Assembly: GCF_001194135.2 (NCBI RefSeq)
Contig: NC_068985.1
Coordinates: 40,693,311-40,757,310, forward strand
From: Octopus bimaculoides
Taxonomy: Eukaryota
Reading direction: 5' to 3'
DNA: 64,000 nt
Shown here piece by piece: positions 1-56,594 of the stretch (positions within the stretch are counted from its first letter, which is position 1; each line of letters starts with the position of its first letter). The position numbers and the translations under genes were made by a program. The notes beneath the pieces were generated by a model that saw nothing but the letters and a program-made list of their open reading frames with translations, made no database searches and was not told the origin of the DNA.

Positions 1-387
1 TTCAAAGTTCACTCTGTTGCAAGCATTTGGGCCAGGTCTTCAGTTTAAGGATACCTTCCTCACACCCTCTAACCAGTCTTAGAGGCCCTCTAAAGTGTCA
101 TGTGCATTACCTTCCCTCTTGACTAAAAGACGTGATGTGTACGTTGCATGCTTGCACATGCAGATGCTCCAGGATAGACTTACATTCAACCCATGTGATT
201 ACTTGTTACAGATGCATTCTACCTTTGAGACAGCCTTATAAGATATAGTTCTTTATACAAGATGTGGAATAAGTTACTGTACTTTAAAATGTGTACTGCT
301 AATGTAATTCTGAAGGAGAATCAGTGTGATGGTCCTCAGAATTATAGATATAGTCCATCCAACAGGCTTTCAAACAATTTCAAAATG

Positions 388-884
388 AAGTGATAGTATG
401 TTGTCAACTTAATGTGACAGTCCCATGAAAGGGAAGAATACTACTGTTATTTATCCCTAGGAAACACCATTTCCTGTGTCCTTATATTTTTAAAGTAGAG
501 ATAAGCACCTCTACTCAGCAAAGCCAGCATCCAGAGACTAGTTTCCGAGTCATTGCTCATGCTCTCAGAGATTTAGAAATGTATTATTTCTATTTTAAAA
601 AATCAGTGAATGTATTTCACTTGAAATATATATGTTTTCAAAGGCGGATAGGCATCGACAGCTAGCAGGCCATGCTACTCCAGACTGATGATGAGCAATG
701 ATTTTGAAACTAGTCTCTGGATGTTGGCTTTGCTGGGTGGAGATGCTTAACTCGATTTTGAAAACATAAAGACACAGGAAATGTGTTAAGTCCAACAGGA
801 AACGGTGTTTCCTAGGGCTAAATAACAGTAGCATTCTTCCCTTCCATGGGACTGTCACATTAAGTTGACAACATACTATCACTT
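388..884. repeat. Long imperfect inverted repeat (arms 388-560 and 691-884)
   Basis: The left arm AAGTGATAGTATGTTGTCAAC...GTCATTGCTCAT is the reverse complement of the right arm ATGAGCAATGA...GTTGACAACATACTATCACTT, apart from substitutions and an insertion of about 20 nt. Confidence 0.9.
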
Positions 885-1742
885 TATCAAGAGATACAAC
901 AGGGCAGGATGGATAAAATTATTAGTGTGTTAGACAAAAAATGCCTTGCAGTATTTATCCCAACTCTTTATATCTATGTTCAAATTTCACTGTGGTTAAC
1001 TTTACCTTTCAAACCTTCTAGAGATCAATAAAAGCACTAGTCAATTTAGTGCAAAACTCCACCTTCCAAATTTATGACCTTGTGACTGATAGGCATTATT
1101 ATAAAGCGAAACAATGACTGTGAGGTTAAGGTGTAGACTATTGACCACATCATCATCATCATCATCATCATCATTTTAACTACTACTTTTCCATGTTTGT
1201 ATGGGACAGATGGAGTTTATTGAGGCAGTTTTTCTATGGTTAGATACCATCCTTGTCAATTCTTACCCATTTCCAAGTGAGGTAATAATTCTCTATGGCC
1301 AGACTTGTTTTCACAGAATACTGGAAATGAATGACATTCATTTACAACAATCACACAATGTGAAGACAAGGAGACACAAACAAACACAATGGGCTATATT
1401 GGAGAACACTTGCCAGAGTGCCATGTAATGGGACTGTCCCTGAAACCATGGGGTTGGGAAGCAAACTTCTCAACCACATAGCTATGCCTGCATCTGTAAC
1501 CACATGGCTTTAAATCCAAATTTCACTGTAAAAGGCTTACTCCACCTTACCTGGCTAATGTAGTATGTCTCAATTATGAACTGGCAAACAATTCTATTTT
1601 CATACACCAACAATTGTACAAATTTTCTTAGGGATTCATTCAGTAAGGTCCAAGACATATCTGAAGTTTGCTCCTTGACTAATTTTGATTTTTCTTCAAA
1701 TATTTCTTCCTAGTTAGCTTTATGAAAATACCCTTCATATTA

Positions 1743-3174
1743 TCAGGTCATCCCATAAGTTCTGTCCGATTTTACCTTTTTTAAAATTGAATGAAATTTA
1801 ATACTAGTTTAGAATGTCTAATGGAATTAAAAATTATTTTTATGCATTTGTGTACATTTAAACTAATTAAATATTATTTTACAGAATAATAGAATTGAAA
1901 TTTCTTTGATTAAAATCCTTTCTAACATGGGAGTATCCAAAGAGCATTTGAGGCACATAATGCTTTATGAGTACTAAAAAGGAAACTCTGCAGCCGAAGC
2001 GACTCAAAACATACACTCAGTTTATGGGAAAGAATGCTTGAATGAAAGAACTTGCAAAAGATGGTTTGCAAAATTCAAAAGTGGAGATTTCAGCCTTGAA
2101 GATGAAGNNNNNNNNNNNNNNNNNNNNNNNNNNNNNNNNNNNNNNNNNNNNNNNNNNNNNNNNNNNNNNNNNNNNNNNNNNNNNNNNNNNNNNNNNNNNN
2201 NNNNNNNNNNNNNNNNNNNNNNNNNNNNNNNNNNNNNNNNNNNNNNNNNNNNNNNNNNNNNNNNNNNNNNNNNNNNNNNNNNNNNNNNNNNNNNNNNNNN
2301 NNNNNNNNNNNNNTCCTGCATTATCAGTTGAAGAATTGGCAATAAAGCTTAGTTCAAACCATACAACTGTTCATCGTCATCTTCAATGACTTGGAAAGGT
2401 TCCTAAACTTGGAAAATGGGTGCCTCATGAATTGTCTGAAAGCAACAGCAAATCCAGAGTTGATATCTGCTCTTCTTTCCATTCTTGTGAACTCATTTCA
2501 CCCTTTTTGGATAGACATGTGACTGGTGACGAAAAATGGATCTTCTATCGAAATGTTAAATGTCGTAAACACTGGTTTGGTAAAAGGGAAAAAGCTCAAC
2601 CACAACCGAGAAGGGAACTTCACGGGAAAAAGGTTCTTCTCTCTATCTGGTGGGATTGCAAAGGAGTAATTCACTTTGAATTGTTACCACCTAATGCAAC
2701 AATCAATGCTCAAGTCTACTGTCAGCAATTAGAGCATTTGAACCAAGCTTTGAAGAAAAAAGACCCGCTTTAGTGAATCATGAAGGAGTGATGTTTCATC
2801 AGGACAATGCGTGACCCCACACTGCAAAGATCACATCACAGAAGATCGAAGAGCTTGGTTGGGAAAAAATTCCTCGTCCACCTTATTCTCCCAACCTTGC
2901 TCCTTCAGACTACCATTTGTTTCGTAGTTTACAGAATCATTTATGGGACATAACTTTCACAAGCCAGGAGGAGGTCGAAATTGACATTTCAGAGTTCTTC
3001 GCTTTGAAACCAAAAGAGTTTTACATTGATGGAATTAAAAAACTTGTAAAAAGATGGAAGGAAGTCATAGATAATCAGGGAAAGTACATTGATGATTAAA
3101 TTTCAATTAAATATAACATTTGATCACTTGTTTTCTTTACTCAAAATTCAGACAGAACTTATGGGATGACCTGA
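1743..3174 (+). mobile_element. Near-full-length mariner (DD34D) transposon, inactive
   Basis: TIRs TCAGGTCATCCCATAAGTTCTGTC at both ends, with TA TSDs at 1741-1742 and 3175-3176. The transposase relic runs from ATG 1927 to stop 3099 with WMPHEL, VTGDEKW, HQDNA*PH and YSPNLAPSDYHLF motifs; it has in-frame stops, frameshifts and an N-gap at 2108-2313. Confidence 0.95.
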
Positions 3175-3269
3175 TAACTATTATTTTCATATGCTATCTC
3201 ACAATTATAGAATTTATAGACAATTCTATTTTCCAATAAATTTCAATCTTGTACATTTGTTTAGTGATA

Positions 3270-3928
3270 GCCCGTTGCCTATGCCAGTGGGTGTAACCAG
3301 CCCACTTATGAATACCCCTCATTCATTGGACAATAAACTTTGCTTGCGAAGACCTATTGAGGCAAGTGAAATCAAATCAAAATTACTGACATGGCCGATG
3401 ACAGTACCGCCTGATTGGCACTCGTGCCAGTGGAACGTTAAAAGCACATCTGAGCGTGATTGTTGCTAGGGCCAAATATTGGCTCTCGTGCCAGTGGCAC
3501 ATAAAAAGCACCATTCAAGTGTGATCGTTGCCAGCGTCGCCTAACCAGCAAATGTGCCGGTGGCACTTGTAAAACAACATTCGAGTGTGGTCGTTGCCAG
3601 TACCGCTGGACTGGCTCCCATGCAGGTAGCACGTAAAAAACACCATTTGAGCCTGGTCGTTGCCAGAACCGCCTGACCGGCCCTCGTACTGNNNNNNNNN
3701 NCTGGTCGTTGCCAGAACCGCCTGACTGGCCCTCGTACTGGTGACACGTAAAAGCACCAACTACACTCTCAGAGTGGTTGGTGTTAGGAAGGGCATCTGG
3801 CTGTAGAAACTTTGCCAGGTCAGATTGAGCCTAGGTGCAGCCTTCTGGCTCACAAGTCCTCAGTCAAACCGTCCAACCCATGCCAGCATGGAAAGCAGAC
3901 GCTAAACGATGACGATGATGATGATGAT
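3270..3928 (+). mobile_element. RTE LINE 3' UTR fragment with tandem hairpin array and (GAT)n tail
   Basis: Matches the sequence after the stop codon of the long RTE copy (50185-50580). It ends in the CCATGC-CA-GCATGG hairpin and GATGATGAT. Confidence 0.85.
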
Positions 3929-5551
3929 CCTTTCATCACAACTTCAGCAAGTACAATGAAAGCTGTTTTACTGATGAAGTCATAAAACCAAAAACATGAC
4001 TAAAGTTGTCTTCCCATTCTTTTAGGAAAAATTAGAAAAACAATTTCAAGTTATTTTTCTCACCACACATTACTAGTTATGTTTTTAAAGTTGCATAGAT
4101 TAGGATATATTAACACTGTTATAAAACAGGCATCACTAGTTTGTCATGATTAAGTGGCTAGCTGCAAGAATAACACTGACTTGTAAAACAAATTGCATCG
4201 GCTATTGGAGAAAACATCACATCACAGCCAGACAAGAAAAGAGAAATGGATGCAAAGCAGTAAAATGAAAAGAAAAGAAAATCCTATGATTTTGTTTCAT
4301 GAAAATAAACAAATTTATCACATGAACCACACCCAGTTTACTGTGGTGATAATAACTAATTAGTGTTAGTAATAATGGTTTTACATTTTGGCACAGAGCC
4401 AGCAATTTTTAGTGATTTGGGTAAGTCAATGACATTGACCCCAGTGCTCATCAATTGGTATTTATTTTATCAAGTCTGGAAGGATGAAAGGCAAAGTCAA
4501 ACTTTGGTGGAATTTGAACTCAGAATGTAAAACCAAAAGAAATGTTGCTAAGCATTTTGTTTGCCATGGTACTGATTGTACAAGTTCCTGCTTTTGCTAG
4601 TAATTAGTTGCCAGTAGTAGTAGTAGTTATAAGAAACACCAGTAGCAGTTGCTGTAATGACAGTGATCATGTAAAAATAGTAGTAATATGAAATATTTAG
4701 AGCTGGTAGGAGTAGTAGCAGTAATAGTGGTATTAAGAAGTGATAACTGCAGTAGTAAAAGTAGCAGTGGTAGCCCACTGCTCTGCATGATCTGAGCACA
4801 ACATCCAAACTATTCTAATTACTTCTTAGAGAAACAGATTGAAGAATGTAAGTAAAACTCTACATATTTGACTCAACAGAAGCAAACAGCCAGGAAGTGG
4901 TTTCAGACTTCACACTGCATGTGTGTCACAACACAGATAACAGCCTACAGGCAAGTGGTTATATGGCTATATATAGAATAGAGGTGGTAACAGTGAATAA
5001 GAAATATTTTGATATGCAGTAAATTTCAATTTGCAAGTGATTGCATTTAAATTTAATGCATATGATTAAGTGGACGACCAATGATGGAGGGTAGCAGACA
5101 AATGAACGAACCAACCAGCTGAGAGATTAATGGGTTCAAATTTTGTCACTAACCTCATACTTTACCCTTGGCATAGACACTTAAATCTCAAAATCCTCAG
5201 GTCACTTGGCTCTGAATAGGGTATAAGAAGTATTTGCCACAGTAAACAGCTGCAGTGGTTTGTTAGCTTGTAAGGTTGAGTTCAACTATTCAGGCCAACA
5301 ACAGCCTCTAAATAGTCACACAACCTGCTAGAAACAGCAGCTAAAATCTTAAAATCAGATGCTAATTTTAAAAATGGAAAGGTTACAGTGAAATAATACA
5401 GTTCAATATGCCCTTACAAAGACATTCATGACTGGAGTGTCAATGATCAGAGACCTGCTTGTATTTAAGTAAAACTAAGCTTCCACACTTAACATTTGTT
5501 GACCTGAAGATTGCTGTCAACAGGAAGCCTTGTTCTGTGACCTGGTGGTTT

Positions 5552-6652
5552 CTGACAAAGCTAGCGGGTAGATGAATGGCTTGTGAGAACTATACAAGTC
5601 ATATACAGAGATGCTGTCAGCAAGGTTACAGTTAGCAATGAGTACAGCGATGAGTTTAATGTGCACATAAGAGTTCATCAAAGCTTGGCTCTCAGTTTCC
5701 TATTCATCATAGTCTTCCTAGTCATAATAGACAAGTTTAAGATTAGTTGCTTGTGGGAACTGATATATGCTGAATTCTGTAGGAGAATTAGAAAAGAAAC
5801 TTCCTGTATGGAAGCAAAGGATCTCAAAAATCAATCTAGTGAAGACATAAGTCCTAGTAAGTAGGAAAACAGACAAATCCTTGTTTCCATAAGAGAAATG
5901 GTCTTGCTCAATATGTACAAAAGTGTAGGCTGAAATTCTATACATTGTGCCCATGCAAACTGTGGGCACATAAGAGATGCAGTGGTATCAAAGGCAGGTT
6001 AAAAGTGAAAATAGACTTTGTATGTGGCAGGTGCTCAGGAGCAATAAGTACTACAAGCATATGGAAAAGAGTTTTTGACAAATGCACAAGTGGATTTTTT
6101 TGTGGTAGTAGATACTTTCTGTTCCATTAGTGGCCTAATTAGTAATGAAGGTGGAGGTCTCAAAAGTATAGTTGCTACAATATGAACAGACTGGAGAAAG
6201 CTTGGAGAGATTTTACTTCTGCTAGTAGCAAAAGGATTTTCTCTCTCAAAATGAAAAGGCAGCTTGTATGACACTTGCTTACTAACTGCAATGCTACATG
6301 GTAGTGAGACATGGGCCCTGAATGCAGAGGACTTGTGAAGATTAGGAAGAAACGAAACTAGCATGTTTCACTGGATGTACAACACAAGTGTGCATAAACA
6401 ATGAATTACAAATGGGCATAAGAGGAATCAAGATATAGTCTGCAAGAAAGTAGACTGCACAGGTATGGACATGTAATGCATATGGATGAGAATAGCCGTA
6501 TAAAGACGTTCTCATCTTTTAAGAGAGAGACTCAAGAAGTTACGAGATAAAGTAGTAAAAGCTGATCTCAGGACTTTGAACCTCATGAAGATGAAAACGG
6601 ACTAGGATGACCGGAGATATATGGTGCTTAAGAAGACCCACCCATCATGCAA
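5552..6652 (+). mobile_element. Degenerate RTE LINE fragment (RT C-terminal half with PHD-like insert)
   Basis: VHIRVHQSLALS..FIIV, CKFSCLWELIYA, CKLWAHKRCSGIKGRLKVKIDFVCGRC and later RTE C-terminal motifs, with many stops and indels. Confidence 0.85.
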
Positions 6653-7778: not shown

Positions 7779-9536
7779 CTGTAAAGCAAAAAAGAACAAC
7801 AAAGTTTACATAAGTACAGTAAAAACAACACATCGTGGGAAGGGTACCTAAAGTTTAAAAGTTATATCTATATGAGGTGGTCTGCAAATATTTTAAATTT
7901 CAGTTAAACCCCCCACCACCACAACCACACAAGAAATGAGGATGATTAATCATTCTGATATGTACAAAAAGAAGCAACAATACTGCATGGGTGTGTGCAC
8001 ACATATCAGAAATACTAAGTCAAAGTGTACTGAACATTACCAGATGATAACTTTATTATTTTTTTATAAGATAGTGCTATGATTTTAAACGATACAGATG
8101 AGATTATGGTTAACAATGCAAAAATCAAATAGCGATTCACAGGAGCCAGTTACTTTATTTGTGAAACATTACAAAATAAAATAAAATACTTTTAAGATAA
8201 CATTAAAGTAACATACGTTAAGCTGGAGAAGTGCTGTTATTTTATTGCTCAACTGCAAGAGTTTTTCACATTAGATCCTGTAGAGCAAACTCAACACAGG
8301 TAAAAGACTCTAAAGATGCTCTCCACAATGTTACAAATATAAACTAAAAACAGACTATAAAAGAGACTAGCCTCATAACATGGAAAGCATTATCCTGCAT
8401 TTGAGAATAAAATTATTTCCTTGTCTGTATATTTCAATACATCTCAATGCTTCTAAAGCAAACTTACTTTGTTGACTTTCAACGTAAGTTGGATTTAACA
8501 TATATATATATATATATATATATATTACTATCATGAAATTAGCATTAGCTTATCTCACTTTCTTGCAGAACCCCTAGGAACCTTTTGTGGAACTCCGGCT
8601 GAGAAACGCTGAACTAAACACTTGACATCCCCACTTAAACAAAGATTGGGCACCTGAACAGTCATTTTTTCTTTTTGTTAAGGAGTCTGAAATAGAGCAA
8701 GAAAGACTGTTCATAGCTCCTTTGGGGCCCTTATAAAGTGAGTGATTAGTCAATAGAAATGGTGTGAGGGAAGGACATTCTGCTTGAACTGTTGCAGGTT
8801 AGTAGTTCAATAAACAATGTTGCTTGCAGTTGTTAGAAGACAGGATTGGGGTTAAGTGCTTATGAGGTGTGGATGGACTACTTATTCAAGTGTGGGTGTT
8901 ATGTAATCCAAGGTCAACTTTGATCAAGCAGACCTATGGCATGCAAATAATCAGTCAGACACCCAACAAATCTATTGCTTCATGTATACCATACCTCTGC
9001 TTAGCTGAAAACAACACTGGGTGCACAGAGAATGCAATGGTTGACTGTGTGGAGTGAAGTGCAAAAGTTTGGATACATTCTATCCTCTCCACTGCCCAGT
9101 CTATTACATACACTTGTAATTGTTTAAACTAAGTTAGTTCTAACTGAGCAAATCTATGATCAAAGGCATTTTTTTCTCAGCTATAGTTATCTAACATTAC
9201 ATCATCAAATGTGGCCTTGTTTTTTCAAGGATAGCAAAATTTGATTTTAAGATTTGGTTAGCAAAAGAAATGGCTATGTAAAGGTTCCCTTATTGGCTTT
9301 TCTGCATAATTGTGGATCCTGATGGCAGCCATAAGGAAGTCAGCAGGAATGACAAAGTAGTAATGATATGAGGTGTGGCAGTGAATGAATTAAGATTAAG
9401 AGTAGTACAAAATTAGTGTGTTTATACCAGATCAGAGGCTATTATAGTAGTTAGGAGGCTGAACTGAACAGAACTAGATAGGGAGTTAGCAGTTAATGTA
9501 TTGATCATTCTTTATTTCGACTAGATACAATCTAGA

Positions 9537-12517: not shown

Positions 12518-13761
12518 AGTAGGAAGGTAGATAAAACACAAACCCCTTCAGGTAGATGGCCCTGCTCAGTATGTAGAAAAGGAGTAGGTAGTAACTCTAT
12601 AAGATGTACCCGGTGCAAGCTATGGACACATAAGAGGTGCAGCAACATCAAATGCAGGTTAACTAGCAAGTTAGTTTTTGTTTGTGGCAGATGTTCAGGT
12701 GCAATAAAGACTGCAAACAAACAGGAAACAACTTCTATCTCATTCCAGGGTGAAAAACTAGAGGTAGTCGATAGCTTCCGCTATCTGGGCGACCAAGTTA
12801 GTAGTGGGGGTGGGTGCGCTGAAAGTGTAGCTGCTAGAATAAGAATAGCCTGGGCAAAGTTTAGAGAGCTCTTACNNNNNNNNNNNNNNNNNNNNNNNNN
12901 NNNNNNNNNNNNNNNNNNNNNNNNNNNNNNNNNNNNNNNNNNNNNNNNNNNNNNNNNNNNNNNNNNNNNNNNNNNNNNNNNNNNNNNNNNNNNNNNNNNN
13001 NNNNNNNNNNNNNNNNNNNNNNNNNNNNNNNNNNNNNNNNNNNNNNNNNNNNNNNNNNNNNNNNNNNNNNNNNNNNNNNNNNNNNNNNNNNNNNNNNNNN
13101 NNNNNNNNNNNNNNNNNNNNNNNNNNNNNNNNNNNNNNNNNNNNNNNNNNNNNNNNNNNNNNNNNNNNNNNNNNNNNNNNNNNNNNNNNNNNNNNNNNNN
13201 NNNNNNNNNNNNNNNNNNNNNNNNNNNNNNNNNNNNNNNNNNNNNNNNNNNNNNNNNNNNNNNNNNNNNNNNNNNNNNNNNNNNNNNNNNNNNNNNNNNN
13301 NNNNNNNNNNNNNNNNNNNNNNNNNNNNNNNNNNNNNNNNNNNNNNNNNNNNNNNNNNNNNNNNNNNNNNNNNNNNNNNNNNNNNNNNNNNNNNNNNNNN
13401 NNNNNNNNNNNNNNNNNNNNNNNNNNNNNNNNNNNNNNNNNNNNNNNNNNNNNNNNNNNNNNNNNNNNNNNNNNNNNNNNNNNNNNNNNNNNNNNNNNNN
13501 NNNNNNNNNNNNNNNNNNNNNNNNNNNNNNNNNNNNNNNNNNNNNNNNNNNNNNNNNNNNNNNNNNNNNNNNNNNNNNNNNNNNNNNNNNNNNNNNNNNN
13601 NNNNNNNNNNNNNNNNNNNNNNCGTTAGGAAGGGCATCCAGCTGTAGAAACTCTGCCAAATCAGACTGGAGCCTGGTGTTGCCATCCGGTTTCACCAGTC
13701 CTCAGTCAAATCGTCCAACCCATGCTAGCATGTAAAGCGGACGTTAAACGATGATGATGAT
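12518..13761 (+). mobile_element. 5'-truncated, little-diverged RTE LINE (internal N-gap 12876-13621)
   Basis: Open frame from 12518: SRKVDKTQTPSGRWPCSVCRKGVGSNSIRCTRCKLWTHKRCSNIKCRLTSKLVFVCGRC...LEVVDSFRYLGDQVSSGGGCAESVAARIRIAWAKFRELL. After the gap the family 3' tail ends in GATGATGATGAT. Confidence 0.92.
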
Positions 13762-24346: not shown

Positions 24347-24962
24347 TACCCAGTTCAGTCTGTAAAGTAGATGGTGTTAGGAAGGGTATCCAGCTGTAGA
24401 AACTATGCCAAAACAGACATGGAGCCTGAACAGTCCTTGAGCCGGTCAGCTTCTGTCAAGCTATTCAACCCATGCCAGCATGGAAAATGGACATTAAATG
24501 CTGATGGTGATGATATATATATATAAATTTATCTGAATTAAGTATCCAGATGATATAATACATAAGAAGGTTTTTACATTAGGTAATTTGAGTGTACATG
24601 ATATTGGTGACTATTCTTTTAGATTTGCCATTATACTTGCATCATACCTAGGAGTTCTTAATAGAACAATATACTATTTTCTATGTGGAAACAGATAATA
24701 AGTAGAAAAGAACTGACCTATTTTACTTAATGATTATCATTGAAATATATTAACTGTCGCTGTAAGAGTCACTAGAATTAGAAAATGCAATTATGTAAGG
24801 GTGAATGGCAGTGGTGTCAAAAAGTCTGTTTAATTCTTGGCACAATAATGTGTTTTTTTTCACAATGTTCACCATCTGTGACAAGGTTGCTTTGAATCAT
24901 GCATTCATAAATATAGATTATTCAAGTTCTGGTCCAACACAAAGCTCATTAGCCTTGCTTAA

Positions 24963-27712: not shown

Positions 27713-28932
27713 GTATCTACTTTTCTTGCGATGGGATAAACATTTAAAAACACAAAACGAACAGTCACCACTCACTGTCTCTTTCACTCTCTCTCTCTCT
27801 TACTTCCTCTCTAAAACATTAAAAAACACAAAATGAACGCCATCACCACTCACTATCTCTTTCACCCTCTCTTTCTCTCCCTTTCTCTGTTACTTCCTCT
27901 CTGTCCTCCTCTCTCTCACTTTGCCACTCACTTCTTCCTTTGAAGTAAAGAGTGACACACAGCACAGATATGGACAAAAACAAACAAAACTAAGTGTATT
28001 AATATTATTGATTACAAATAATAAAATATTGAAAACAAGCTAAATTATCTGTCTTTTATCTGGCACCTTGCTGCACTCAAGAAGACCTGTCCTCCACAGC
28101 AGAAGTGTTAAGGCTGCTCCACCTAATGAAGGGAGTTGGCCTGCAAGAGTCCTGTGCTGGTGCCATGTAAAAGCACCCAGCACATACTGTAAAGTGGTTG
28201 GTGTCAGGAAGGGCATCCAACCATAGAAACCAAGCCAAATCAGAACCTGGTACAGCTCCCCAGCTTGCCTACTCCTTCAAACTGTGCAATCCATGCCAGC
28301 ATGGAAAACAGATGTTAAAGGATGATGATGTCAACAGAAACTTATAAAAATATTTAACGGTACGTTGGTAGTTGTACGGGGAGGATACATCAACTCAATA
28401 CACCTCCGTCCCCAACCTACATAATTACACTATTTAATGACTAAGAAACATTTTCTAATTGTCTAAATGAAAAATTCTCCTAAAAACATGAAAGGAATGT
28501 TTAATTTCATCTGCCTATCAGTAATTTGCAACAAAAAAATGACAACAAAACCATTGTGGTTGTGCACCACCCTAATGGCTGATCATTGTTTACAGAAAAC
28601 ACCACAACCAGAAATACAAGTTTTATGTCCTGTATGGGAATTCTCTTGATCAAAATATAAACAAATATACAGCTGAACTGAAAGAAGATAAAGTTGAAAT
28701 ATGTTACTCCCATAATGTAGTTTATGATAAATTTATGGTTTCAAACTGCATTCCAGTATACTATCACAACATTGTATTTACATGTACAAACTCATAAATT
28801 TCCTCCAACAAAACCACTTTAACAAACCTTTCAATGGGTGTATGATGAAACATACTAAATTTGTTTTTTTTTCCATAAAATATACTTGTAAAATAGAGGG
28901 GCATTGTGAGAGTGCAAGTTATATAAAAAGAA

Positions 28933-36640: not shown

Positions 36641-37129
36641 TGATTTGCAAAACAGACATGTTATTTATTTCAACTATGCATTGGATGACTTGATGTAAGA
36701 TTTTGAAGCCATAATGGTTGTAAAAGTATTATTGTATTGTGTGGGAGATACCAGTGTCACGCAAATGGAACCAGTGTTGGTGGTATGTAAAGGTGCCCAT
36801 TACACTCTCAGAATGGTTGGCATTAGGAAGTGTATCCAGCCATAGAAACCATGCCAAATTAGACTGGAGTCTGGTGCAGCCTTCCAGCTTGCCAGCCCTG
36901 GTCAAACCGTCCAACCCATGCCAGCATGGACAACGGATATTAAATGATGATGATGATGATATAGGATTTGGGGGCTAAATTTGATGATTTTCTATGTCTC
37001 TTTTCTTCAGGAAAAGCTAGATGTATTGGTGAACAGTTAATGTTGGAGAGCATCAAGATTAAGGTTATAGTTGAGAAAAAGTTAGCTGATGTGGAAGATT
37101 GGAAGTCATCTGAATACTGGAAGAGTTAC

Positions 37130-39039: not shown

Positions 39040-40575
39040 TGATTGTGCAAACATGCATCACTCATATAATTATTCAAGTTATACTGGAACGTGTCATATC
39101 CAAGGACTTGCAGTGTAGTATCTGCATGAACTGCTACAAAGGCAAAGGAGATGCCTTAGGAGAGGAATTTATAGAAGAGTTAAACTACTGGATCAAGTTA
39201 TGAAGGTCATGGAGAGAGTTACAAGACAAATACCTTAATAGACTTATATGAGATGCTGCTTGACCTCTTGCCTACTGTGTGGGCTGTATAAGCAATGTCC
39301 AAAGATGCAGTGAGTGAGTGCTAACAATGATTTCAGTGACAAATTTATCATGAGGGTAGGAGTCCATCAAGGCTTAACCATCAGTCCCTTCTTATTCATC
39401 ATGGTCCTACAATCCATCACAGAGAAATTTAAAACTGGCTGTCCATGGGAACTCTTGTATGCTGATAATCTAGTTGTCATAACTGAATCTATAGTGGAAT
39501 CATGATCATCATCCTTTAATGTCTGTTTTCCATGCTAGCATGGGTTGGATGGTTTGAGAGGAAATTCCAAGCATGGAATCTAAACCTAGAATCAAGAGGC
39601 CTGAAGGTAAAATTAACAAAGACTGAGGTTTTAGTAAGTAGGAAAGAAGACAGGACCCTATCTCCAGGGAAATGGCTTTGCTAAATATGCAGAAAAGAAG
39701 CTCCATTGAAACTGGTACTCTGTCGGTTATGATGACAAGGGTTACAGTTGATCTGATCAATTGAACAGCCTGCTCCTGAAATTAATATGCAAATGGCTGA
39801 GCACTCAGCAGACATGCATATCTTTAATGTAGTTCTGAGGGAAATTCAGTGTGACACAGAATGTGACAAAGCTGATGCTTTTGAATTACAAGTACAACTC
39901 ATTTTTGCCAGCAGAGTGAACTAGAGTAACAAGACAAAGTGCTGCCAGAGTGAAACTCTTGACCTTACAATCATGAGCTGAATACTTGAAACCACTAAGT
40001 TGCATGCCTTCACAGGAGTATCATACACTGCACCCAATGTAAGCTATGGACACACATGTGGTAGAGTGGAATCACAGGCAGACTCAAAAGAAAGCAAGCT
40101 TCATCTGTGACAGATGCACTGGAGCAGTATGTTTCCAACAGCACATTGGAAAAAAATTTTCTTAAATGCTTGGATGACTCTCTACATGTAGTTGACAGCT
40201 TTTGTTAATTAGAAGAGATAATTAGCAAGGGAAGTTATAGAAAATAGATTAAGAATGGCTTTGAAAAGTTCAGGGAGCTACTGCTGCTAGTATTAACAAA
40301 GTTCTTTGTCCTCAGAGTAGATGGCAGATTGTATGACCTCTGTGTTATAACTGAAGCTGCATAGTGGTGAGACATGAGCCTTGAAAGACTGGAAAGAACT
40401 GATGCTAGCACATTCCAATGGCTATGCAATGTAAATTTGCATGAATGACAAAGTACAAAAGGGAAATTAAATGTAGCGTGCCAGACAGAAGATTGCACTA
40501 GTATGACCAAATGATGCATATGGATAATGGCTGCTGTATAAAAAAAGTGGCAATCACTTAATGTGGATGAAACTA
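39040..40575 (+). mobile_element. Degenerate RTE LINE fragment interrupted by a SINE and an RTE tail
   Basis: CYKGKGDAL, GVHQGLTISPFLFIMVLQ, CPWELLYADNL, a decayed PHD and the C-terminal region. Inserts lie at about 39500-39560 (minus tail) and about 39770-40015 (SINE). Confidence 0.85.
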
Positions 40576-41480
40576 TGTACGAGAGATTTGTTGTTCATTC
40601 ATAAGACTGTTCTCTCTCTACACATTTTACACTGTTCACCCTTCTGAGCTACCAAATTATTCCACCTCTCCTTCTCTATTTACTATGCCTGCCCCATACT
40701 CTTACAATCAAGCAAACCACTTATCATATCTCTCTCTTTGCCTCATCTTCTCTCTTCCTTCCCCTGTCTGCTGTATTATTATTACTATTCTGCTACTCTT
40801 TACCTATCTCCTTCAACACTCAGTCATGTCTGCTTCCCTATCTCCCTCAACTTACCTGTATCACTGATCACCTCTCAACCTTACATAATTTTTAGTTATC
40901 ACCTACTCTTCCTCTTTTATTCTCTCAACACTTGTTCTTTATATTCACCCTCTCACACATTCTCTATTTGTAACCATCTCTCTCCTCCATACACTTTTAC
41001 ATCTACTCACCCACACTTCTTGTTCTCCTATCCCCAATTTATCCACTTTGCACCTTAAGGGCCCACCCTGACACCTCAATATCACTATTTTTTAAATTTC
41101 CTTTCAGCTCCACTACAACTACTCCCAGTCACCCTTGTAAAATTTGAGTAGTCATGCAGCTCCTCTACAGCAAGAAACCTGTTCTGGAACCTCTCACATT
41201 TTAGTTACTCATCTCATTGTATAAAGCTGCCCATCACCCTCTCTAATGTAGACCTACTCAATCAAAGAGGATCGTAGTTATACAGGCTGCGTAGCAACTT
41301 CATTGGTGCCACGAAGGAAAAACAAACTGTACATGCTGTAAAGTGGTTGACATTAGGAAAGGCATCCAGTTGTAGAAACTATGTCAAAGCAGACACTGAA
41401 GCATGATGCAGTCTTTGCATCAGATGGTTCCTGTCAAACCATTCAATCCATGCCAGCATGGAAGATGGAAGTTAAATGTT

Positions 41481-47879: not shown

Positions 47880-50577
47880 AGCCACCTAATAACCTATCAA
47901 TCAGGCGACTCTGCCAGCCTGATTGATAGGTTATCAGACAGCGGGATGCATGTTTGCTCTTAAATACAAAGACCCTCCCTGGCGAAGAATGTACCCCCAG
48001 CATAGTCTAATCATTAGTGACTTTAGACTTGAGACCAGAAGGATGCCAAGAAGCAGATCAATCTTGAAAAGAAGGATTTGGAACCTAACGACACTTCACA
48101 TGGTCAGAGATTTAAGGACATCCTCACGGAGCAATTTGATGAGAGGGAGGAGGAGCCACAGACTTGTGACATAGAGGGTAACTGGAAATTCCTATGTGAC
48201 AGCTTACTGAGCACCACAGATCAAATCTGCGGCTGGTGCAAAGTCCCTTCCAGACCTAGGGTAACATGGTGGTGGAACAATACTGTAGATAAGGCCATTA
48301 GAGCAATGAAACAGGCCTGGAAAACCTGGAAGAGTGCGGGTAGCAGGAACTGTACCAGATAGCCAGAAGGGAGGCTGGGAGACAGGTATATATAGCCAAG
48401 AGAGAAGCAAATAAGAAGAAGTCTGCGAATGTTCAGCGAAATGAGGACCAAAGAACTGAAGTATTTCGGATTGCAAGACAGTGTGTGAGAGAAAATTACA
48501 GGAGAGAAGTGTGTCTGCATAGATGATGGTGCACTTGCTTTTAATGATTCTTCAAAGAAATAGGCTTGGAGATGCCATTATGAAAGGCTGCTGAATGTGG
48601 AGAATGAATGGAAGGAGGAGAGCCTGCCAGATGTTGACCCAATCGAGGGACCAGCTACCCGAATCGATAGCGCCCTGGTAGATAAAGCAATTAAGGATTA
48701 AATGTCATGAAAAGCTCCCGGCCCGTCAGGAATCACTGCTGAGATGCTTAAAATATCTGGTGGTGTGTGTTATGGTCTAGTCATAGCAGCACCATAGTCA
48801 GCTGCTACAAAGGTAAAGGTGATGCTTTAGATAGAAATAACTACAGGGGCATCAAACTGATGGATCAGGTGATGAAGGTCATGGAGAGGGTCATAGCCCA
48901 ACTAATTAGGAAGAGAGTCTGCTTAGATGAGATGCAGTTCAGTTTTGTGCCAGGTAGAAGCACCACTGATGCTATATTTCTGGTAAGGCAACTGCAGAAG
49001 AAATACCTAGCCAAAGATAAACCTGTATACTTGGCTTTTGCTGACTTGAAGAAAGTCTTTGACAGGGTCTCCTGATCCCTTATCTGGTGGGCGATGTGGA
49101 AACTAGGGATAGACGAGTGGTTAATAAGAGCTGTACAGGGATGCTGTCAGTAAGGTAAGGGTTGGCAATAAGTATAGTGAAGAATTCTGGGTAGAAGTAG
49201 GGGTTCACCAAGGATCAGTCTCCTCTTATTCATCATAGTCCTCCAGGCAATAACAGAGGAATTCAAGACATGCTGCCCCTGCGAGCTCCTCTATGCTAAT
49301 GACCTTGCTCTCATAGCTGAATCACTACCAGAACTAGAGAAGAAATTTCAGGTGCGGAAGCAAGGTTTAGAATTGAAGGGCCTTAAAGTCAATGTTGCAA
49401 AAACCAAAGTCTTAGTAAGTAGGAAGGCGAACAAACCACAAATCCCTTCAGGTAGATGGCCCTGCTCAATCTGTAGAAAAGGTGTAGGTAGAAACTCCAT
49501 AAGATGTACCCAGTGTAAGCTATGGATGCATAAGAGGTGCAGCAACATCAAAGCAAGGTTAACCGGGATGGTAGCTTTTGTGTGTGGCAGATGCACAGGG
49601 GCAATAAACACTGAAGATGCTCAGAAAACGATTCCATCACATGCCAAGGGGAGAAACTAAAAGTAGTTGATAGCTTCCGCTACCTATGTGTCCAAGTCTG
49701 TAGTGGTGGGTGGATGCTCTGAGAGCGTTACCACTAGAATAAGAATAGCCTAGGTAAAGTTCAGAAAGCTCCTACCTCTGCTGGTGACAAAGGGCCTCTC
49801 ACTCAGCGTGAAAGGTAGATTGTATGATGCATGTGTGCGTACTGCCATGCTACATGGCAGTGAAACATGGGCTGTGACTGTTGAGGACATATGTAGGCTT
49901 GAAAGAAATGAAGCTAGTATGTTGGACATAAGAAGCATCAAATGTGGTGGGCAAGAGAGACGACTGCATTGGTATGGTCATGTGCCGTGTATGGATGAGG
50001 AGAGCTGTGTGAAGAAGTGCCACTCCCTAACAGTGGAAGGAACCTGTGGAAAAGGGAGACCCAAGAAGATATGGGATGAGGTGGTGAAGCACGGCCTTCA
50101 AACATTGGGCCTCAAAGAGGCAATGACAAGAGACCTAGACCTCTGGAGATATGCTGTGATTGAGAAGACCCGGCAAGTAAAGTGAGATCACAGCCATAGC
50201 CTATACCTATGTTGCATAACCAGCCCATTTAAAAAATACCTTTGAATCATTGGGCGACACGCCATGCTTGAGGAGACCTATTGCGGAAGTAAAATCAAAA
50301 ATCAAAATCAAAATGGAAATTGTAGTTGTGGCCGATGCCAGTGCCACCTGACTGGCTCCTGTGTTGGTGGAATGCAATAAGCACCATTCCTGTGTGGTCG
50401 ATGCCAGCCCNNNNNNNNNNTTGGTGTCGTTGGCGTGAGGAAGGGCATCCAGCTGCAGAAACTTTCCCAGATCAGATTGGAGCCTGATGCAGCCTCCTGG
50501 CTTGCCAGTCCCCAGTCAAACTGTCCAATCCATGCCAGCATGGAAAACGGATGTTAAACGATGATGATGATGATAAT

Positions 50578-50580
<3 letters not shown>
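47880..50580 (+). mobile_element. Longest RTE LINE copy (end of APE endonuclease, RT with internal PHD finger, 3' UTR, GAT tail); pseudogenised
   Basis: HLITYQSG...GEECTP-QH.L..SD (endonuclease end), PRVTWWWN, CYKGKGDALDRNNYRGIKL, FLVRQLQKKY...AFADLKKVFDRV, GVHQGS, LLYANDL, PHD finger, FRYL and RTE C-terminus ending VIEKTRQVK*. Several stops and frameshifts. Confidence 0.95.
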
Positions 50581-54828: not shown

Positions 54829-55885
54829 TTATCATCATCATCATTTAACATCTGCTTTCCACGCTGGCATGGGTTGGACAGTTTGACTGAAAACTGGTAA
54901 GCTGTACCAGGTTCCAGTTTGATTTGGCATAGTTTTAACAGCTGGATGCCCTTCCTAATGTCAACCACTCCAAGAATGTAGTGAGTGTTTTTTATGTGCC
55001 ACCAGCACACGTGCCAGTTATGTAACACTGGTATTGGTCGTGACTACAATCGTACTTGTCTTGACAAGTCTTCTCAAGCACATTTGAATGGTGCTTTTTA
55101 TGTGCCAGTTATGCAACACTGGCATCAGCCATGACTATGATTTCACTTGATTTGATGGGTCTTCTCAAGCATGGCATATTGCCAAAGATTTCCATCACTT
55201 GTCATCGCCTCTGTGAGGCCCAACGTTTGAAGGTCGTGCTTCACCACCTTATCCCATGTCTTCCTAGGTCTACCTCTTCCACAGGTTCCCTCTACTGTTA
55301 GGGTGTGATGCTTCTTCACACAGCTGTCCTCGTCCATACGCAACACATGACCATACCAGTGTAGTTGTCTCTCTTGCACACCACATCTGATGCCTCTTTT
55401 GTCCAACTTTTTTCTCAAGACACTTACACTCTGTTGTGCATGTACACTGACATTACACATCCAGTGAAGCACACTAGCTTCATTTCCTTCAAGCCGACAC
55501 ATGCTCTTGGCGGTCACAGCCCATGTAGCATGGCTGTTCATACACAGGCATCATACAATCTGCTTTTCACTCTGAGAGAGAAGCTCTTTGTTACCAACAG
55601 AGGTAGGAGCTCTCTGAACTTTACCCAGCCTATTCTTATTCTAGCAGCTATGCTCTCAGAGCATCCATCCCAGCTACTGACTTGGTCACCTACATAATAG
55701 AAGCTATCAACTACTTCTAGTTTTCCCTCCTGGCATTTGATGGAGTCTATTTTCTGTACATTTCTAGTGTTAATTGTACCTGTGCACCTTCCACACACAA
55801 AAATTATTTCCCTGTTAACCTTCCTTTGATATTGCTGCACTTCTTATGTGTCCATAGCTTACACCGGGTACATCTTATGATGGAG
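54829..55885 (-). mobile_element. 5'-truncated RTE LINE copy
   Basis: Minus ORFs with FVCGRC...LEVVDSFYYVGDQVSS...RIRIGWVKFRELLPLL and RLHWYGHVLRMDEDSCVKK...RGRPRKTW, followed by the 3' UTR and tail. Confidence 0.9.
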
Positions 55886-56594
55886 TTTCATATCATCTTT
55901 ACTGTACCTTATCTTTTATTTACAATCTTTCATTCACTTGTTTATGATGGTCGACCATCTTGTCCCATTGACTGTTGGACCTTTGAAATCCTTTGACATC
56001 CTTTAAGTGGATGAGAGATTCTTTCTCTTTTTCCTCTTTTCTCTTTCTTTTTTTTCTCCCTTTGTATTTCTCTTTCTACCCTTCCTCTATTTCAATCCCT
56101 TAAACAAATCCATTAGTTCATTACCATGTATATTTACCTTGAAATAGCATTCTCTATTCACTCTCTCAGCTGTTACCAAAATGGGAGGGTCAATATGCAT
56201 TATGTTTTATTTATGTAAAAAATCCTAAATGTTAAATTTTACTCTTAATTCACCCGAAGAAAACATTTTTTTTACACAATATAATTTTTTTGTTCATTAG
56301 TAAAAAGCACGTCTGAAATAGCTGTAGTGAACCTCAACCCATTTGTGTTATTGTTTATACTTCACCACACTCAGAACCTTCCTAGGATGGATCGTGAGCC
56401 TATAGTTGACTGTGGAATATGTGCTGGAGTGTACTCTTGTGTGATTTCGTGTATACATTGTGTATTTGGTCAATATTTGTGAATGGAGGGACAAATTCAT
56501 ATTAACTTTAGTAAGCACGTGTGTATCCGTTATTTAAACACCTTGATTCTATTGTATCCTGAAAATTTATATATATATATATATATATAAAATC

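Follow-up and report, generated by a model that had tools for sequence, protein, structure and literature searches.

A PHD-type zinc finger inside the reverse transcriptase of an RTE-like LINE family from Octopus bimaculoides, and its possible role at the target site

In this study, a stretch of 64,000 nucleotides from Octopus bimaculoides, referred to below as the window, was analysed, and we observed that a LINE family represented in it carries a zinc-binding module within its reverse transcriptase (RT). This module, about 46 residues long, is with near certainty a true zinc finger of the PHD type, set in an insert of about 60-65 residues, and it is equally close to certain that it is a true insertion in the RT, in the loop between motifs 6 and 7. 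The PHD finger is best read as a target-site anchor on chromatin or DNA, with docking of the histone H3 tail as the leading mechanism, to which the sequence features lend a likelihood somewhat short of even. The wider proposition, in which a target-DNA-contacting RT loop of an ancient animal LINE clade was turned into an H3 tail reader through which the polymerase would sense the chromatin state of nucleosomes, is possible but rather doubtful.

Identity of the finger and LINE copies in the window

The best-preserved LINE copy harbors an intact C4HC3 finger at 49457-49594 of the forward strand, recognized by translation, Pfam and the fold matches of an AF2 model. Its translation, WPCSICRKGVGRNSIRCTQCKLWMHKRCSNIKARLTGMVAFVCGRC (WPCSIC...FVCGRC), falls within the open reading frame at 49352-49660, and the zinc ligands are spaced C-x2-C-x10-C-x2-C-x4-H-x2-C-x14-C-x2-C; the peptide, spacing and coordinates had been given exactly by the first-pass annotation. 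The ligands span 49463-49594 in this copy and 12563-12694 in the other intact copy of the window. In the six-frame translation of the window, a regular expression for the C4HC3 module matched only these two intact copies, and it matched nothing in 100 shuffles, so that a chance origin of the module is excluded. The same annotation had assigned the peptide to the PHD class and had proposed a PF00628 profile comparison and a structure prediction as checks, and the assignment held in both. Against PF00628 (PHD), which is also the family matched in homologs of the LINE finger, the peptide recorded 30.9 bits alone and 29.7 bits in the context of its ORF, the curated gathering threshold being 24 bits. 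The AF2 model of the PHD alone (pLDDT 73.9) adopted a PHD fold, solved PHD fingers being cross-braced with a small beta-sheet, and the 50 Foldseek matches listed from the PDB were all PHD-finger-containing chains, with TM values of 0.5-0.62 and E-values of merely 0.02-0.1 because the domain is small. In the full-length predicted model (pLDDT 89, pTM 0.85), residues 351-400 stood at 88-93. The aromatic PHD signature residue two positions before Cys7, which is W377 in Pygo2 (PMC2927781), was F or Y in all 157 sequences.

That the module belongs to another class, such as C2H2, RING-variant or C1-type, has a close to negligible probability. An earlier report gave the label C2H2 to the zinc finger in an RTE element of octopus (PMC9115989), the C1_1 profile gives a weak sub-threshold Pfam match (23.6 bits vs a cut-off of 26.5), and the RING families match likewise weakly; however, the C4HC3 order, the eight ligands and the C-x2-C and C-x4-H spacings are those of a PHD finger and neither of C2H2 nor of RINGv, PHD is the sole zinc-finger Pfam model above its threshold, and the fold matches of the predicted structure are limited to PHD fingers. 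The C1, RING, RINGv, ZZ and C2H2 classes were all considered, and they either stayed below their Pfam thresholds or required the wrong ligand order or spacing.

Five dead, 5'-truncated LINE copies were detected in the window, all of them lacking the endonuclease and two of them with an intact finger. The 49.4k copy is a coding remnant on the forward strand, running from about 48000 to 50185 in three-frame translation, in which a post-endonuclease linker, RT motifs 0-6, the PHD, motif 7, the thumb and the C-terminal region follow one another, interrupted by several frameshifts and stops; a tblastn search with the homolog P0005 as query covers 48489-50158. Its whole insert (linker-PHD-linker) occupies 49418-49674 (+) between KTKVLV of motif 6 (49400-49417) and FRYL of motif 7 (49675-49686), which had been placed at about 49400 and 49675 beforehand. 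One base pair is missing from the insert near 49632, and a stop is present at 49658; because of the deletion FRYL lies in a different frame from KTKVLV. The 3' UTR of this copy, at 50186-50578 (+), is interrupted by an assembly gap (N) at 50412-50421 and closes with the conserved tail ...CCATGCCAGCATGGAAAACGGATGTTAAAC(GAT)n.

The second copy, at 12518-12876 (+), is truncated at its 5' side just upstream of the finger and meets an assembly gap; its motif 7 reads FRYLGD, and its intact PHD at 12557-12694 keeps 8/8 ligands and shares 80% amino-acid identity with the finger at 49457-49594. Two further copies are old and decayed. One, at 5462-6401 (+), holds a frameshifted PHD remnant (5879-6034) of which the C-terminal half, CKLWAHKRCSGIKGRLKVKIDFVCGRC, is still legible, and the other, at 39057-40457 (+), holds two stop-bearing PHD halves (39673-39723 and 40008-40085) with about 285 bp of foreign sequence between them. 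The remaining copy, at 54844-55887 on the reverse strand, is 5'-truncated within the PHD, and displays a PHD remnant with one frameshift (55878-55784) and the conserved 3' tail (54871-54844). When the 3' UTRs of the four long copies were aligned, only the two young ones could be matched, the old ones being too diverged. The additional fingers, intact at 12557-12694 and decayed or partial in three other copies, were found where the first-pass annotation had located them, and its view that the finger is a feature of the family and not of a single copy agrees with the window copies and with the homologs, which carry it as well.

Family architecture, placement in the RT and conservation

Full-length members of the family, taken from a search of representative proteins, consist of an APE endonuclease, the RT, the PHD, the thumb and a C-terminal region. 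In a full-length protein of 1031 aa, Exo_endo_phos covers residues 29-240, RVT_1 551-755 and the PHD 771-815, and identical intact 1031-aa ORFs were discovered on separate contigs. The combination of RVT_1 and PHD has already been flagged by automatic Pfam annotation. No full-length element adjoins the homologs P0005, P0037 and P0041, their loci being either truncated at the 5' end or without any called feature upstream. In the consensus of 69 sequences, no conserved Cys/His (CCHC) motif follows the thumb, the region downstream displaying just RLRWxGHV...RGRPxKTW. At the 3' end, a conserved tail about 45 nt long leads into (GAT)n and not into poly(A), and six such conserved tails were noticed in the window vs five RT bodies. 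Elements of the RTE clade have no ORF1; their only ORF, of about 1000-1100 aa, places an APE-type endonuclease at the N-terminus ahead of the RT and has no CCHC motif after the RT, and their 3' end is made of short tandem repeats next to a conserved tail that may be common to them and SINEs. On the basis of architecture, the label RTE is plausible for the present LINE family, and an octopus element of similar architecture has been placed in RTE (PMC9115989).

The placement of the finger within the RT, as claimed beforehand, agrees with both gap lengths and profile alignments. The distance from motif 6 (KTK) to motif 7 (F-x-YLG) is bimodal: carriers have 83-96 aa, and relatives that lack the PHD have 23-34 aa. 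Profile alignments with L1 ORF2p and R2 extend as far as the start of the finger, and the end of the Pfam RVT_1 profile (205/205) is reached only in the PHD-less relatives. Judged by analogy of position after motif 6, the insertion site would correspond to the motif 6a loop of R2, which protrudes into the target DNA during target-primed reverse transcription (PMC12180492, PMC11204384).

With regard to conservation, the insert is present in all 120 of the closest homologs, and 111 of them keep all eight ligands, a persistence of Cys and His on which the first-pass annotation had staked its reading; none of the eight ligand columns varies among 60 homologs. The PHD has a mean column identity of 0.70, compared with 0.65 in motif 7 plus thumb and 0.52 in the C-terminal region, finger and thumb being conserved to a similar degree, and it is still 0.63 at the non-ligand positions of the PHD. 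Between the two intact fingers of the window (12557-12694 and the 49.4k copy; 46 PHD codons) dN/dS is 0.28. It is close to certain that the finger is held under purifying selection in cnidarian, mollusc and amphioxus elements. The 30 PHD carriers in the neighbor-joining tree of the RT core all fall on one side, and since they form one RT-core clade, the sequences fit a single acquisition of the finger. At -2 of Cys1, Asp takes the place of the aromatic residue in one sub-lineage, and in another the spacing H-x3/4-C was observed. If the finger were just a passenger, derived from an exon fragment that was captured and is tolerated in a surface loop without taking part in transposition, this would suit the variable length of the finger's loop, the weakly conserved linkers on both sides and the abundance of PHD-less relatives, for instance in teleosts; against it stand the retention of the insert and its ligands in the nearest homologs, the conserved non-ligand positions, the dN/dS value and the identical intact full-length ORFs on separate contigs, which together make such a passenger very improbable.

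Histone-reader features and possible roles at the target site

A profile search of the PDB returned Pygopus as the best match (E 2.6e-7), then PHF23, KDM5B, Alfin-like, PHF13, PHF2, BPTF and TAF3, and the closest solved relatives of the finger are mostly H3K4-methyl readers. The first-pass annotation had described a reader signature made up of a Trp two residues before the His and an aromatic residue just before Cys1; the W-x-H part is conserved, in 155 of 157 sequences, but the aromatic residue is found two positions before Cys1 (138/157) and not directly before it. In TAF3 the arrangement before Cys1 is W-I-C and in ING and BPTF it is Y-C, and the semi-aromatic pocket of the LINE finger is presumably TAF3-like as well. 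By alignment, the W-P-C of the LINE finger has the arrangement of Pygopus, Y-P-C (numbering of PMC2927781 and PMC2726290). The conserved Trp aligns with W366 of Pygo1, the residue (W366/W353) that, as a wall, separates the K4me pocket of Pygo from its A1 pocket (PMC2726290, PMC2927781), and the position two before Cys1, which aligns with Pygo Y341/Y328, holds His in 10 and Asp in 5 of the 157 sequences besides the Y/F/W of the majority. Taking the Pygo1 pocket residues as defined in PMC2726290, five of the seven have conserved equivalents in the LINE finger, V350 being matched by V in 55/60 sequences, A356 by S or A in 59/60 and I357 by I in 58/60. The conservation of Val, Ile and Ser could also serve the fold alone.

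The acidic side of the Pygopus pocket, which contacts K4 and anchors the tail at R2/A1 of H3, has no conserved counterpart. At the LINE positions aligned with D352 (the K4 lip) and E360 of Pygo1, no conserved Asp or Glu was detected, and the EVND 'Pygo loop' is absent from the finger in the alignment. The finger's net charge varies from +2 to +10 around a median of +6, with K or R at most positions flanking the ligands, and a finger of such basic charge is electrostatically ill suited to the H3 tail, which is basic as well. Acidic contacts to R2 of the H3 tail are made by BPTF and ING. The PHD of Pygo2 in the same alignment has a net charge of about -4, and the histone face of Pygo is described as acidic (PMC2726290).

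The mechanism that we propose would start from the loop after motif 6, which would face the target DNA in target-primed reverse transcription. In this LINE family, a motif 6a-type loop may have been replaced by a PHD finger that kept a pocket of Pygopus type, with the aromatic residue at -2 of Cys1, the Trp at -2 of His, a floor of Val and Ser/Ala, and an Ile channel. Such a finger could dock the N-terminal H3 tail, probably K4-methylated, on the nucleosome beside the nick, its basic surface lying on the DNA meanwhile, and docking would hold the RNP on chromatin and bias the landing sites of the copies. Elements of this architecture lack ORF1, DNA-binding fingers at the N-terminus and a CCHC knuckle at the C-terminus, so that the finger may be their sole dedicated target-engagement module.

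Two other roles have to be weighed against histone docking. The finger may be a nucleic-acid-binding or structural zinc module that grips the target DNA, the primer or the 3' RNA tail of the element, standing in for the CCHC knuckle and ORF1 absent from LINEs of this type, and not a histone reader; we regard this as a substantial though clearly minority possibility. The basic charge and the K/R residues around most ligands suit contact with nucleic acid, the insertion site is equivalent in position to the DNA-contacting loop of R2 (PMC12180492, PMC11204384), a conserved Cys/His motif is missing from the family consensus beyond the thumb, the 3' tail which the protein must recognise is extremely conserved, and the acidic histone-contact residues are absent from the finger. 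What speaks for a histone reader instead is that the near-invariant Trp at -2 of His and the aromatic residue at -2 of Cys1 make up a methyl-lysine pocket signature for which the PHD fold has no need, and that the nearest solved relatives almost all read H3K4me. The nucleic-acid and histone roles of the finger are compatible with each other.

Alternatively, the finger might dock another protein, either a host factor or a second copy of the ORF protein, by way of a free N-terminus or methyl-lysine that mimics the H3 tail, or through its rear surface as Pygo does with BCL9. The PHD fingers of Pygo do have two binding faces (PMC2927781, PMC2726290), and in the LINE finger the pocket residues are conserved while the histone-specific acidic ones are not. 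Yet no candidate partner is known, and because the family spans several animal phyla such a partner must be very conserved, which points back to histones; docking of another protein is an improbable explanation.

Significance and comparison with known systems

Little is understood of what, apart from the short endonuclease motif, decides where APE-type LINEs land. A reader borne by the polymerase, at the place where R2 touches its target, would, if true, offer a concrete and mutable handle on site choice, and it would help to explain single-ORF elements that lack ORF1, N-terminal fingers and a CCHC knuckle. If the finger does read the H3 tail, integration would be guided by chromatin rather than by sequence, which to our knowledge has not been shown for any non-LTR element, and if the marks read are those of active chromatin, new insertions would be biased toward active genes. 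For gene insertion based on retrotransposons, the field from which the cited R2 structures come, targeting modules embedded in the RT have practical interest as well. A finger that is only a DNA or RNA clamp would be a smaller finding, namely a zinc finger put in modular fashion in the place of a loop. Since RTE-type LINEs are reported to be expressed in octopus neurons, the octopus holds added interest (PMC9115989).

A zinc finger in an Octopus RTE element, as mentioned by the first-pass annotation, does exist in the literature. RTE-2_OV is a single-ORF LINE of octopus expressed in the brain; its 1109 aa comprise an endonuclease, an RT and a single zinc finger, and its phylogenetic position is in the RTE clade (Petrosino et al. 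2022, PMC9115989). Set side by side by description, it is probably the same family as the present LINE or a sister family. In that report the finger is called C2H2, with no PHD assignment and nothing on its placement within the RT, and the position of the finger and the sequence of the element are absent from the main text and the 16 supplementary files (PMC9115989). A full-text search of the literature found no paper describing a PHD inside an RT.

PHD domains are likewise encoded by other non-LTR retrotransposons, those of the Jockey/CR1/L2 superfamily. In CR1/L2-type LINEs they were reportedly described in ORF1 by Kapitonov and Jurka in 2003. They lie in ORF1 or at the ORF N-terminus, upstream of the endonuclease, whereas the present PHD lies within the RT fold, where it separates motifs 6 and 7 of an RTE-like element with a single ORF. 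A general role in targeting the host genome has been proposed for PHD domains in ORF1 of CR1/L2-type LINEs, with no functional study as of 2014 (Metcalfe and Casane 2014, PMC4120745). Like the present insert, motif 6a of R2 extends the RT after motif 6 in a manner that varies between lineages, and it engages the target site in target-primed reverse transcription (PMC12180492, PMC11204384, PMC13188248). In R2, however, it is a short loop between ZnF and Myb domains that wedges into the upstream target DNA, whereas the present family has a complete zinc-finger domain in a protein that has no domains for DNA binding at its N-terminus.

The best PDB sequence match is the Pygopus PHD (PDB 4up0, 2vpe; PMC2726290, PMC2927781). 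Both fingers share [Y/W/F]-P-C-G-x-C, V, small-I-x-C and W-x-H-x-x-C-[ST]-G, but the LINE finger has a shorter loop between Cys6 and Cys7, lacks the D352/EVND loop and E360, and carries a charge of about +6 vs about -4. We know of no BCL9-type cofactor for it. The chromodomain of chromoviruses and the PHD of RAG2 are likewise histone-mark readers built into the integration or recombination machinery of mobile elements. In chromoviruses the chromodomain sits on the integrase. A chromodomain reader has been mentioned for chromovirus-like LTR elements (10.64898/2026.05.21.726589), and the RAG2 PHD binds H3K4me3 (PMC3520747). These systems derive from LTR elements or DNA transposons and work with an integrase or recombinase, on which the reader is a terminal appendage, whereas in the present LINE family the putative reader is an insert in the polymerase itself.

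A C4HC3 finger in the LINE copies of the window

The RTE-like LINE of the window contains a C4HC3 finger. The peptide reported by the first-pass annotation at 49457-49594 is an exact plus-strand translation, lies inside a 102-codon ORF (49352-49660) and has the ligand spacing C-x2-C-x10-C-x2-C-x4-H-x2-C-x14-C-x2-C. The flanking reverse transcriptase (RT) motifs were found where they had been placed, KTKVLV (motif 6) at 49400 and FRYL (motif 7) at 49675; a 1-bp deletion near 49632 has put the two out of frame with each other. With this peptide, tblastn recovered every further copy that had been listed: the copy at 12557-12694 is intact (80% identity, 8/8 ligands), that on the minus strand (55878-55784) is 5'-truncated, and the remaining two, at 5879-6034 and 39673-39723 plus 40008-40085, are decayed. 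Scanning six frames of the window with a C4HC3 regular expression matched only the two intact copies, and 100 shuffles of the window gave 0 matches. All five LINE copies here are 5'-truncated pseudogenes without the endonuclease. About 285 bp of unrelated sequence (39723-40008), probably a later insertion into a dead element, splits the PHD halves of the 39.7k copy. The true extent of two copies is uncertain owing to assembly gaps (N): the 12.5k copy breaks off past motif 7 at one gap (12877-13620), and another (50412-50421) lies within the 3' UTR of the 49k copy.

The proposed PHD assignment held in profile search and structure prediction alike, and a PHD finger placed inside the RT is supported. 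For the window peptide the Pfam PHD score was 30.9 bits (cut-off 24), and every solved structure matched by a profile of 60 homologous fingers was a PHD finger, the best being Pygopus (E 2.6e-7). When the finger was modelled by itself with AlphaFold (pLDDT 73.9), all 50 Foldseek matches listed for it were likewise PHD-finger chains (including ARID5, ORC1b, BPTF, TAF3, BAZ2B, ING4 and BHC80), at TM-scores of 0.5-0.62; the small size of the domain makes the E-values weak. In the model of a 619-residue homolog (pLDDT 89, pTM 0.85), the finger reached pLDDT 88-93, and the two flanking linkers were of lower confidence. None of the other zinc-finger families, C1, RING and ZZ included, reached its own Pfam threshold with the finger peptide.

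Position within the reverse transcriptase and family distribution

The claim that the finger interrupts the RT domain was borne out. The family profile could be aligned to L1 ORF2p and R2 up to motif 6 and ended exactly at the finger start; in L1, about 30 residues lie from the KS motif to the KYLG motif. Among the best 150 representatives from 1.84 billion proteins, the spacing of motifs 6 and 7 fell into two groups, 23-34 residues in PHD-less proteins, including a teleost element, and 83-96 in carriers of the insert. The Pfam RVT_1 model reached its last position only in PHD-less proteins; in carriers the match stopped at profile positions 193-199 of 205, with the remainder past the finger. 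The full homolog model resembled the R2 and L1 ORF2p structures of target-primed reverse transcription (TPRT), with TM 0.61-0.68.

The insert belongs to the family rather than to one copy, as had been proposed: the stitched RT gave 2174 matches, of which the best 120 all carry it, and conservation of the Cys and His residues, on which the first-pass annotation had staked its reading, was complete (8/8 ligands) in 111 of these 120. Named sources are Hydractinia, Octopus vulgaris, Mercenaria and Branchiostoma, and identical intact copies are present on separate contigs. Full-length members are one protein of about 1000-1040 residues, as in the homolog P0125, which displays Exo_endo_phos (29-240), RVT_1 (551-755) and PHD (771-815), then the thumb and the C-terminal region. 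When the RT core without the insert was put into a neighbour-joining tree (no bootstrap), 30/30 carriers formed one clade with a PHD-less sister, compatible with a single PHD acquisition. The architecture is of RTE type: the family apparently has a single ORF, its consensus lacks a conserved Cys/His motif past the thumb, and its conserved tail is closed by (GAT)n. A similarly built octopus element was placed in RTE by phylogeny (PMC9115989), and our family likely belongs to the RTE clade, judging from architecture. One homolog, P0002, 69% identical to the octopus RT+PHD, carries the record name 'MAG: hypothetical protein [Herbaspirillum sp.]'; it seems to come from animal DNA that binning assigned to a bacterial metagenome-assembled genome. 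At L001, the locus encoding homolog P0005, a Helitron-like ORF (Helitron_like_N, PIF1 helicase; 1-4472, minus strand) adjoins the 5'-truncated LINE copy.

A conserved 3' end of about 45 nt reads GTCCAAYCCATGCCAGCATGGAAAACGGATGTTAAA, contains the palindrome CCATG-CCAG-CATGG and precedes (GAT)n; it is probably the RNA signal recognised by the RT. In the window it occurs at 50531-50558 (plus strand), 54844-54871 (minus strand), 28292-28319, 36917-36944, 24471-24498 and 41449-41476; with six tails against five RT bodies, some tails are SINEs or extreme 5' truncations. The tail of an element of another organism (L001, about 7810-7870) is nearly identical to that of the window, while their RTs are only 59% identical. 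In some distant members (P0005, P0019; L001 7840-7860) the ORF continues into the tail, giving C-termini of ...HASMENGR or ...VENGR; in the window copy the tail lies in the UTR, about 390 nt past the stop (50183-50185).

Candidate ligands of the finger

In Pygo1, the K4me2 pocket has walls of W366, Y341 and D352 and a floor of V350 and A356, I357 lines the T3 channel, and E360, hydrogen-bonded to the R2 backbone, is critical for A1 anchoring (Fiedler et al., PMC2726290). Reading the equivalents from the HMM alignment, we observed Y, F or W two before Cys1 (Y341) in 138/157 sequences, Trp at W366 in 155/157, Val at V350 in 55/60, Ser or Ala at A356 in 59/60 and Ile at I357 in 58/60. D352 has no equivalent, its loop being missing in the family, and E360 has no conserved acidic one. 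The finger's net charge is positive (median +6, range +2 to +10), as against about -4 for the aligned Pygo2 finger, whose histone face has been called acidic (PMC2726290). The hydrophobic half of the methyl-lysine pocket is thus conserved and the electrostatic half not, which points either to reading of histone tails by a finger that lies on DNA as well, or to a nucleic-acid clamp.

An H3K4me3 reader is plausible, though the acidic contacts, one of its defining features, are not conserved. Histone-tail reading in general is a tentative proposal, somewhat short of an even chance, in which the finger would dock the tail while also lying on DNA. Nucleic-acid or structural binding only, for example by a clamp retaining the PHD scaffold, is a slightly weaker candidate, and another protein ligand is unlikely. 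That the finger has no function is very improbable: mean column identity was 0.70 over the finger (0.63 without the ligands), compared with 0.77 for RT motifs 1-6, 0.65 for motif 7 plus thumb, 0.52 for the C-terminal region and 0.50 for the two linkers, and dN/dS over the finger of the two intact window copies was 0.28, a weak estimate from 46 codons.

Two sub-lineages depart from the common pattern. In P0130, P0146, P0150, P0151, P0158, P0260, P0124 and P0129, 3 or 4 residues rather than 2 separate His from Cys6 (WVHYKKC, WVHGRKC), and P0127, P0207 and P0244 read D-P-C, with Asp at the usual aromatic position two before Cys1. Elsewhere among PHD fingers this change is associated with recognition of unmethylated lysine.

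Comparison with known systems

In TPRT complexes of R2, the motif 6a loop forms a wedge in the upstream target DNA, between the ZnF and Myb contacts; the loop varies among R2 lineages (PMC12180492, PMC11204384, PMC13188248). Judging by its name, motif 6a follows RT motif 6, the same sequence place as the family finger, and from this position we infer that the finger may face the target site. Such a site favours a role in target engagement, whichever reading is taken.

A full-text search, covering little of the subscription literature or of Repbase Reports, turned up no account of a PHD finger within an RT; automatic Pfam annotation already gives RVT_1+PHD for these proteins, and a prior mention is possible. 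Integration machinery with histone readers is familiar from chromoviruses and RAG2. PHD fingers also occur in ORF1 of CR1/L2-type LINEs, where a targeting role was suggested, with no functional study as of 2014 (PMC4120745). The zinc finger of the octopus RTE described by Petrosino et al. (PMC9115989) was labelled C2H2.
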